64,000 nt of DNA from Thalia democratica (GCA_965202585.1 OZ241827.1:64046001-64110000), one strand, 5' to 3'; shown: positions 45,701 to 63,688, counted from the stretch's first letter. Notes: generated by a model from the sequence alone, not told the origin. A program made the numbers and translations.

Positions 45701-48700
45701 AAAATTTACTTTTTAAAACAAGGGAATTTACTCCTAGCTTATGAATCGCTGGTATAGTATTACTATAAAAATAAAATTAACTAAAGTTTTAATCTTGTTC
45801 ATGCTTGAATCTGAACGGAACTTAAGTTGAGGGTTAAGAAGTTTTTTTGTTTAAAAAAGTAAATAAAGGCACATATTCCTGTTAAAAGTTTATTTAAAAT
45901 ATAGTCCGTTGTTGCCTGTATATCAGAGTACTTTTGTAAGTGAACTCAGATTGCTGCTTATTTCACCAATCCAAGCTTGTATTTTGTACAGTATAAAACA
46001 AAGGAACTAAAAAAATTAGATTATTTTAATGGTTACTCTTAAAATTGTTATGGTTATTTTATCAATATAGGATGGAGGCTCGATTTAGTAAAAATAAAAT
46101 AAAGCTCAACTGATTTATCTTGTAATTTTTATAGAAATCAAGTCAAGTTCTTACTTATTTAATTTAAATTTATACCTTCCATTTACGAAAATTTAAGTAC
46201 TTGTTAAAATTTTTTTACAAATTAAAAAGGTACTTTTATCAAACATAGATATTGTGGTATTAATACACTACTCACATCACTTGGTTCATACATTAACTCT
46301 AATCTAAACAATATATGATAAGTTTTAAAAGTACTGAGAATTTCTATTTAATTTTTATGGTGTACATTAACTTTTGTGAAGATATACGTGGAAAGGGCTT
46401 TATGAACTAAATATTTTTTCTAATTTTTACAATGCTGATTTTTACAATAGTGATTTTAATCGAATTGCTCTCACAGACCAGAAGATATACGTGGGAAGGG
46501 CGCAGCGCAAGGAGGAGAGGATGATGATCGACGAGGGGTGCAACTTGTACGTGAAAAATATAGACGATTTCGTCACGGACGAGCAGTTTCGCTCCGCGTT
46601 CGCTTCCTTCGGCGCCATCAAAAGTTGCAAGGTTCGTTTTGTGGTTTTTTACCTTCAGTAGGTTTTTTAGAATGGATATTAGTGCTTAGGAGCAAACTTC
46701 TTCGTATTTGCTTAAAAAGGGCAAGTTTTTTTTTGTTTCGGCGTCATCAAAGGTCGCAAAGTTTGTAATTGATTATAAGTTTGAAAAGCTTTTTGTTGTT
46801 AAGGAGTTGTCTGTTCTCGTATTAGGTCTTTAGGAAAAAGAAAATCATTTGCACAGGAGTTAGTTTTAACATAACTTTAAGATAACAGTTTATTTTATCT
46901 CTTTACAAAGCAAAGAGCTAATTAAAACGTAATTATTATTTTTTTCTTTTTAATGGGTTATTACATTATTATTTAAAGTTTGTTGGATTTAAAAGTTATA
47001 CTCAATGTTAAGGAGGTTAAATATAGTTTAAGGAGTTTTAATATATTTAAAAATAAAAATACTTAGAGTATTAAATTCTCAGCTATGATTAAATAAAAGT
47101 ATAACTGTACATTTCAAATATACATATATTTATATAAATATTGTTCATAACAATCTGTAAAGCACTGCAAATGGTCGTACTTAATAAAGTATTTATTTGT
47201 ATTTTACAATGGTGATCTGCTTTCTGCAGTGAAACTCAGTCGTACCAAAAATTCTCAATTGAACACCAAAACTGCTATTTCTGCTTGCCACTTTGTGTTA
47301 GAGCACTTTAAATTTCGTCCAGATAAGGACTCAGCCGGGTGTATACGATGTATATGTATACATATTATCCAATCCCTATAAACGTATATAATTGTAGAAC
47401 CGCTTACCGAACGGGGGTTAGGGGTAACAGTGATAGTGAAAAAAACATATATACATATATATAAAATAAATTAAGAAATAAAGAAAATGTAAAAAAAATC
47501 GGGTGGATTTTAAACACGGGTGGATTTCGATCGGTTGGATTTTGATAGTATACCATATAAGTTATATTATATAATATTATATATATAAAATACAAATTGT
47601 TCCCACCAGATAATGCGAGACGACGAGGGGAGGTCGAAGGGGTTCGGCTTCGTCAGCTACCAGCTGAAGTCGTCGGGCGGGGAGGCGATCAGGCAGCTCA
47701 ACAGCTACCCGCTGTTCAGCGCCGACAAGCAACTGGTCGTCTGCCACCACCAGAAGAAGGAGGAGAGGATCAAGATGCTGGCGACGATGAACATGAACCG
47801 GCAGTTCAGTGTGAGTTGGTTTGTAATACAAATAAAATAATATATATGAACATGAACCGGCAGTTCAGTGTTAGTTGGTTTGTGATACAAATAAAATAAT
47901 ATGTATGAACATAAACCGGCAGTTCAGTGTTAGTTGGTTTGTGATGATACAAATAAAATAATATGTATGAACATGAACCGGCAGTTCAGTGTGAGTTGGT
48001 TTGTATTAATACAAATAAAATAATATGTATGAACATGCACCGGCAGTTCAGTGTGAGTTGGTTTGTGATACAAATAAAATAATATGCATGAACATGAACC
48101 GGCAGTTCAGTGTGAGTTGGTTTGTGAAAATACAAATAAAATAATATGCATGAACATGAACCGGCAGTTCAGTGTTAGTTGGTTTGTGATAATACAAATA
48201 AAATAAAATGTATGATCATGAACCGGCAGTTCATTGTTTGTTGGTTTGTGATACAAATAAAATAATATGTATGAACATGAACCGGCAGTTCAGTGTGAGT
48301 TGGTTTGTGATACAAATAAAATAATATGTATGAACATGAACCGGCAGTTCAGTGTGAGTTGGTTTGTGATACAAATAAAATAATATGTATGAACATGAAC
48401 CGGCAGTTCAGTGTGAGTTGGTTTGTGATAATACAAATAAAATAATATGTATGAACATGAACCGGCAGTTCAGTGTTAGTTGGTTTGTGATAATACAAAT
48501 AAAATAAAATGTATGATCATGAACCGGCAGTTCAGTGTTAGTTGGTTTGTGATACAAATAAAATAATATGTATGAACATGAACCGGTAGTTCATTGTGAG
48601 TTGGTTTGTGATAATACAAATAAAATAATATTTATGAACATGAACCGGCAGTTCAGTGTGAGTTGGTTTGTGATACAAATAAAAAAATATGTATGAACAT

Positions 48701-63688: not shown

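Follow-up and report, generated by a model that had tools for sequence, protein, structure and literature searches.

Why does a single intron of a poly(A)-binding protein (PABP) gene hold more than two hundred copies of the gene's own exon end and 5' splice site, and do these copies serve the gene or simply ride along with it? The locus lies on the plus strand of the window, i.e. the whole 64,000-nucleotide stretch of Thalia democratica DNA that was analysed. A preliminary description of this window preferred a regulatory answer, a U1 sponge or NMD decoy setting the PABP level, and kept as its fallback a neutral satellite in which coding constrains the first unit. This earlier interpretation is partly supported by the analysis presented here: the fallback fits the data, whereas the preferred sponge or decoy finds no support.

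To define the host gene, the exon translation was used in a HMMER search, which retrieved a 578-aa protein (P0001, E 4e-47). The cluster of this protein at 90% contains eight proteins of 561-579 aa, six of them full-length and two without the first 17 residues, encoded by intron-less JGI-sample contigs of about 2 kb that were taken to be metatranscriptome cDNAs. Two such contigs, L005 and L006, are 97-100% identical (98% overall) to ten collinear blocks of the window, which places them in the same species or in a very close population. Once resolved at GT-AG borders, the alignment gives exons at 29063-29166, 30547-30745, 34333-34526, 42945-43110, 44594-44700, 45201-45336, 46477-46631, 47610-47810, 63180-63257 and 63635-63688, all on the plus strand. 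Exon 7 (47610-47810, 59% GC) encodes the C-terminal part of RRM4 and ends with MNMNRQFS; both L005 and L006 cover it collinearly with 98% identity, and tblastn with P0001 detects it as well. Exon 8 (63180-63257), found by the cDNA contigs and by tblastn, is joined to exon 7 in all cDNAs. The border between exon 7 and the intron, as set by the cDNA contigs, is at 47810/47811, that is, the exon ends 24 nt inside the first unit of the array and this terminal unit is the live junction. Intron 7 (47811-63179) measures 15,369 nt, about 87% of which is filled by the array.

The encoded protein has the layout of a cytoplasmic poly(A)-binding protein. Indeed, Pfam assigns RRM_1 in four stretches (E 2e-76) and an MLLE domain (E 5e-17) to P0156, one of three marine lineages of the host PABP (P0156, P0001 and P0160), which are 84-95% identical to each other. 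The identity of the host protein to named PABPC1/4, including an ascidian PABP1-like protein, is only 36-46%, which makes it a fast-evolving PABP or else a divergent paralogue. The donors of the gene, namely GTTCGT (4 of 10), GTGAGT (2), GTATGT, GTTGGT, GTCTGT and GTACAA, define a GTNNGT rule that is far from the GTAAGT consensus; the common donor variants of the array fit this local set, as had been proposed. Exons and introns are also sharply distinct in composition, with 49-62% GC in exons (35% in the 5' UTR exon) versus 21-28% in introns outside arrays (21-37% in introns overall). As a separate observation, positions 1-43 of L006 are collinear with window 30504-30546, so that this cDNA begins inside intron 0 and runs into exon 1. 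Such a 5' end points to an alternative start or to intron retention, and it shortens the called ORF to 562 aa.

The array is a single tandem repeat, reported by TRF at 47787-60886 with a period of 59, 216.6 copies and 91% matches. Using CGGCAGTTCAGTG as an anchor gave 222 matches, spaced mostly by 59 nt (109 times) or 62 nt (104 times); 221 of them are units from 47787 on, and one, at 47709, falls upstream of them, within exon 7. Division at each unit start gave 217 clean units at 47787-60897 (109 of 59 nt, 105 of 62 nt and 3 of 58 nt), a length that comes from a single assembly, followed by about five (4-5) decayed tail units that extend to about 61210 (60898-61211) and are orthologous to ghost units of a sister clade. 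The remainder of intron 7 (61212-63179) is unique sequence. A unit starts with 24 exon nucleotides (ATGAACATGAACCGGCAGTTCAGT, MNMNRQFS in translation), continues with the donor hexamer and closes with an AT-rich intron stretch of 29 or 32 nt, the 3-nt difference between the two main lengths being confined to one indel site after GTTTGT. A dimeric higher-order organization, corresponding to the alternative 121-nt period of TRF, was considered and rejected in its strict form, as units are equally distant at lag 1 (5.38) and at lag 2 (5.33). There are no runs of N in the window, and an Rfam search of 47000-64000 found no family at the gathering score.

Unit 1 (47787-47845, plus strand), recognized from its sequence and from comparison with the sister clade, is the live unit: it comprises the last 24 nt of the exon, the authentic donor GTGAGT (47811-47816) and 29 intron nucleotides. 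It is followed by 216 ghost units of 58, 59 or 62 nt (47846-60897, plus strand; from TRF and unit cutting), each with an exon-end copy, a donor-like hexamer, AATAAA and a GT-rich stretch. Over all 217 units, the donor hexamers are GTGAGT (135), GTTAGT (65), GTTGGT (7), GTGAAT (5), GTTTGT (3), TTTGGT (1) and GGGAGT (1). GT is kept in 215/217 units and one of the two main hexamers, GTGAGT or GTTAGT, in 200/217, which means that the ghost units retain the splice-site consensus; 127 donors read AGT/GTGAGT and are thus identical to the true site over nine positions (-3 to +6). AATAAA is present in 213/217 units and precedes the GT-rich stretch GTGTGAGTTGGTTTGT. The frame of exon 7 runs into an in-frame TAA at 47838-47840 (plus strand), where, by translation, ORF 47613-47840 ends, and this stop would be retained by any transcript spliced from a downstream donor. 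In these respects the preliminary description was accurate: it had placed a 13-kb array of some 220 units at 47787-60890, had described the unit as the last eight exon codons (MNMNRQFS) plus the donor and about 29-32 intronic nt, and its donor variants and in-frame TAA agree with our hexamer counts and ORF.

The array is homogeneous without being uniform. Its units fall into 97 distinct sequences arranged in irregular order, with a mean pairwise difference of 5.4 of about 60 nt (9%) and a mean divergence of 3.5% per site from the unit consensus. The sole CpG of the unit (unit positions 13-14, e.g. window 47799-47800) is intact in 216/217 units, and there is no sign of methylation-driven CpG decay in the array despite the 3.5% mean divergence per site.

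In expressed mRNA, only the first, true donor is used, as seen in assembled mRNA. Position 47810 is joined straight to 63180 in L005 and L006, and the three cDNAs L001, L005 and L006 pass from CAGTTCAGT directly to GCGCAACC. At the protein level, all eight cDNA-derived proteins (561-579 aa) read NRQFS/AQP, the first-donor junction; the metatranscriptome contigs behind this count represent assembled, dominant and stable isoforms, among which minor or NMD-degraded decoy-donor products would be missed. Splicing from any downstream donor, or cleavage within the array, is predicted to give a protein of about 398 aa. No such truncated form was found in the 90% cluster or in a full-protein search accepting 318-1013 aa, both of which draw on assemblies that keep dominant isoforms. 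The close relatives in the full-protein search are all full-length, both the P0001 cluster at 95% and P0160 at 84%.

Since the regulatory answer supposes that the ghost donors matter, variation was counted for each position of the unit. In the 217 units, the non-consensus counts at the donor are 1 at +1, 1 at +2, 76 at +3, 11 at +4, 5 at +5 and 0 at +6, compared with a median of 3 variants over the 56 alignable columns, 24 of which carry at most one variant. At +1, +2, +5 and +6, variants are not significantly scarcer than elsewhere in the unit (p=0.13 in both the Mann-Whitney and the permutation test), and the six donor positions taken together give the same picture (p=0.60). The depletion that the preliminary description had proposed to look for at these four positions is therefore not observed. 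The central 26 nt, which include the donor, hold 22 variant alleles in 26 columns versus 42 in 30 columns at the unit edges (p about 0.05, by hand arithmetic). The high retention of GT can be attributed to the youth of the array, given the 3.5% divergence from consensus and the pairwise difference of 5.4 per about 60 nt. Retention of GT in 215/217 units and of a strong hexamer in 200/217 would also be expected under selection, and array youth explains it as well.

The exon-derived 24 nt of the ghost units show no coding constraint. For instance, A1>G (M>V) occurs in 38 units and A10>C (N>H) in 53 units, accompanied by A5>G (N>S), C12>A (N>K), G23>T (S>I) and C16>T, which converts CAG into TAG in 7 units. 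By contrast, the eight cDNA-derived proteins, which span two clades, all keep MNMNRQFS unchanged. This is the situation foreseen by the fallback, a satellite with its first unit alone held by coding: ghost units accumulate non-synonymous changes and a stop, and the real exon keeps the peptide in both clades. A hairpin had also been noted before each donor. The TGAAC-CGGCA-GTTCA stem-loop does exist, and it is weak (-3.2 kcal/mol), intact in only 144/217 units and broken in 73/217 without a compensating change. It was not retained as a meaningful element, given that the frequent A10>C substitution breaks the stem in 44-53 units uncompensated and that the stem amounts to only -3.2 kcal/mol.

The age of the repeat could be approached through related sequences. 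Two 75-aa proteins also belong to the P0001 cluster. They represent the exon-7 frame translated past the donor into the intron, and their source is short marine metagenome contigs, one of which comes from a Tara Oceans assembly. In exon 7, contigs L002-L004 and the cDNA L001 differ from the window at 22-24/201 nt (11-12%), as compared with 4/201 for L005 and L006, and among themselves L001-L004 differ at 3-10 sites; they therefore probably represent a sister clade, a paralogue being the alternative. L003 contains exon 7, four diverged units of 64-68 nt and then unique sequence, and a 280-nt stretch of it is collinear with the tail and unique intron of the window at 60970-61269 (81% over 276 nt). 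L002 carries two more units than L003 (at least 6 versus 4), and its exon 7 differs from that of L003 at only 3/201 nt. In L004, which has at least 2 units, the exon-proximal unit is directly continued by sequence that matches window 60864-60947 at 88% identity, the stretch where the last clean unit meets the first tail unit.

The units of the sister clade are thus orthologous to the tail of the window, and the junction repeat therefore predates the split of the clades and was small at that time. By the same sequence comparison, the roughly 216 homogeneous units lying between the exon and the old units are specific to the lineage of the window. Copy number is accordingly unstable, with 217 units in the window versus 4-6 decayed units in the sister clade, some of which are without a good donor. 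The sister clade nevertheless expresses an orthologous full-length mRNA with the same junction between exons 7 and 8. An origin from a dispersed satellite that merely landed in this intron was rejected, since the unit holds a coding exon end conserved in three cDNA lineages and since the tail units are orthologous in the sister clade.

The internal order of the array preserves traces of its growth. Analysis of runs of identical units detected duplicated blocks of 5-21 units. One tandem case consists of two copies of a 20-unit (1207-nt) block at 54012-55280 and 55219-56487 (plus strand), in which 19 units are identical; this arrangement reflects either recent unequal exchange or assembly stutter. 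Other blocks, of 5-11 units, reappear 62-137 units further along, a pattern by which unequal exchange and slippage are recognized in minisatellites. Unit 1 carries GTAATA and ATATAT where the array consensus has GTGATA and ATATGT, and it partly resembles the first unit of the sister clade. An off-consensus first unit and decayed distal units fit array ends that are excluded from homogenisation, as expected.

The same gene harbours two other arrays. A second donor 'mirage' is formed by a 172-nt tandem repeat at 30718-31088 (2.2 copies, plus at least 2 decayed copies to about 31335), which contains the terminal ~28 nt of exon 1 together with the GTTCGT donor of that exon. Intron 2 contains a 58-nt array of about 98 units (36441-42943, interrupted at 37096-37894), in which homology to the unit extends to within 1-2 nt of the exon 3 acceptor AG (42943-42944). 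Hence, all three large arrays of the PABP gene touch a splice junction, for which a rough estimate of the chance expectation is near 1e-4. The presence of junction arrays elsewhere in the same gene argues for a general mutational phenomenon and against PABP-specific regulation. At 9036-9077, a repeat search returned no junction fossil at the settings used. Some further features of the intron 2 array can be described. Each 58-nt unit has a CACTAAC branch-point-like motif and a C-rich tract, and the interruption is an insertion of about 800 nt at 37096-37894 with inverted termini (CAGGGTTGCCAC and GTGGCAACCCTG) and internal CTCAGGGAA(A/T) short repeats, which looks MITE-like; a similar terminus occurs at about 36375.

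Considering all these data, the intron 7 array is probably a lineage-specific, recently expanded minisatellite of the splice-junction ('mirage') type, carried as a passenger that is most likely neutral or slightly harmful. We envisage that the 3' end of exon 7 was long ago duplicated in tandem together with its donor, so that intron 7 acquired a few ghost units, and that later, in the lineage of the window, the exon-proximal unit was amplified to about 217 copies, probably via replication slippage and unequal exchange acting partly on multi-unit blocks. The spliceosome probably takes the first donor since no other stands immediately behind a real, GC-rich exon that has an acceptor of its own. 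Such a choice would fit exon definition or, by analogy, a 5'-to-3' oriented scanning like that of the human F7 VNTR. Splicing from a later donor would leave the TAA at 47838 in the mRNA, and NMD would then probably eliminate such a transcript.

Regulatory readings start from the same anatomy. In a functional decoy or AS-NMD rheostat, U1 would bind the ~215 ghost donors, transcripts spliced there would gain the TAA and be degraded, and array length would tune PABP or sponge U1. Many RNA-binding proteins indeed autoregulate via unproductive splicing, the stop is placed in frame just after the true donor, and many ghost donors match the authentic site (127 over -3 to +6). We nonetheless consider this reading improbable: the donors show no specific depletion of variants, and the element is not conserved, the sister clade lacking the large array and expressing its mRNA with 4-6 decayed units, several of them without a good donor. 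Moreover, all eight cDNA-derived proteins use the first donor, with no decoy-spliced or truncated product among the assembled contigs and proteins, and the same sort of array at other junctions of the PABP gene points to a general mutational process. As for a sponge, a few hundred U1 sites per transcript would be negligible relative to the cellular abundance of U1. The units could alternatively act as an intronic polyadenylation switch, in which limiting U1 would permit cleavage within the array and yield a four-RRM protein without linker and MLLE. Each unit does offer the corresponding layout, with AATAAA (213/217), CA sites 15-30 nt downstream and a GT-rich stretch, and the 3' end of the gene's own cDNA contains AATAAA, so that the canonical signal is used in this species. 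However, AATAAA occurs at 3.6 per kb in the other AT-rich introns of the gene without evident use, the layout simply comes with every copy of the first unit, the sister clade lacks the large array, and neither a protein of about 398 aa nor a truncated close relative exists in the databases searched; we regard this switch as the least probable of the alternatives. The two ideas can be merged into a length-dependent valve, where each unit would provide a U1 site and an AAUAAA/GU-rich layout, and decoy splicing with NMD, or premature cleavage, would remove a U1-sensitive fraction of the transcripts and so tune PABP output; we give this valve a slim chance.

The array could also be an artefact, inflated or mis-joined in the assembly. 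The tandem duplication of the 20-unit block is compatible with it, as is the outcome of a protein-word search with the 47-aa array ORF and an exact look-up of the 75-aa read-through ORF, which produced no independent array contig from the window's own clade. Against this, the 97 distinct unit sequences with their irregular order and 9% mean divergence, the decayed boundary units and the off-consensus first unit are those of real arrays, the window has no N runs, and independent metagenome contigs show junction repeats at the same exact donor in relatives. An artefact is thus very unlikely. Lastly, in a view related to the valve but less regulatory, the exon edges of this genome would be true hotspots at which minisatellites nucleate, provided that the association is more than ascertainment. 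If so, the mutational mechanism could be tied to splice junctions or to sharp GC/AT boundaries, and would bear on models of intron gain by junction duplication.

As a passenger minisatellite, the array constitutes a natural experiment on the choice of 5' splice sites: more than 200 donors stand between an exon and an acceptor 15 kb away, and the first is used. Comparison with the sister clade dates the event, an old junction repeat of 4-6 units followed by a recent burst, and shows how fast such arrays can inflate an intron (87% of 15.4 kb) without disabling the gene. Poison exons and decoy sites known in genes of RNA-binding proteins are deeply conserved, single or few, and demonstrably used. 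The array resembles these cases of autoregulatory unproductive splicing in that any use of a ghost donor would bring a premature stop, but differs from them in showing no conservation, no constraint and no product on record.

Closer parallels come from arrays that, like this one, begin at a live junction. In the human F7 gene, the first element of the 37-bp IVS7 VNTR spans the exon 7-IVS7 boundary and is followed by several identical pseudo-donors (Borensztajn et al. 2006, PMC1557585). These pseudo-donors are functional but silent, the most upstream site being selected in a 5'-to-3' oriented process (PMC1557585). Here too, an authentic donor is followed by identical pseudo-donors, and the rule of the most upstream site would explain the use of the first donor. 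The F7 repeat is mammalian and has several units only, whereas the donors of the present gene follow the looser GTNNGT pattern and the rule is applied to them by analogy; the array thus extends the oriented-scanning situation by two orders of magnitude, to a distant animal with loose donors.

The nearest counterparts are the amphioxus 'mirages', tandem repeats of exon-intron boundaries described in Adh3, troponin C, the globins BflGb6 and BflGb9, and PGBD5 (PMC3087553, PMC3902484). Their GT/AG signals are kept, their copy number varies and splicing is undisturbed, and their origin has been called unclear (PMC3087553, PMC3902484). The intron 7 array shares with them the boundary-spanning unit, the live terminal unit, the GT/AG signals kept in ghost copies, the normal splicing of the mRNA and the exclusion of boundary units from homogenisation. 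It shares as well the variation in copy number, which is observed between haplotypes in amphioxus and, here, between clades and between contigs of the sister clade. The differences are that the globin mirages have 1-6 duplicated units (unit size 10-160 bp across cases) compared with 217 units and 13 kb here, and that the present array belongs to another animal lineage, in which the sister clade makes it possible to tell an old small array from a recent burst. Collectively, the array displays every mirage feature testable here, and differs from the amphioxus examples mainly in scale.
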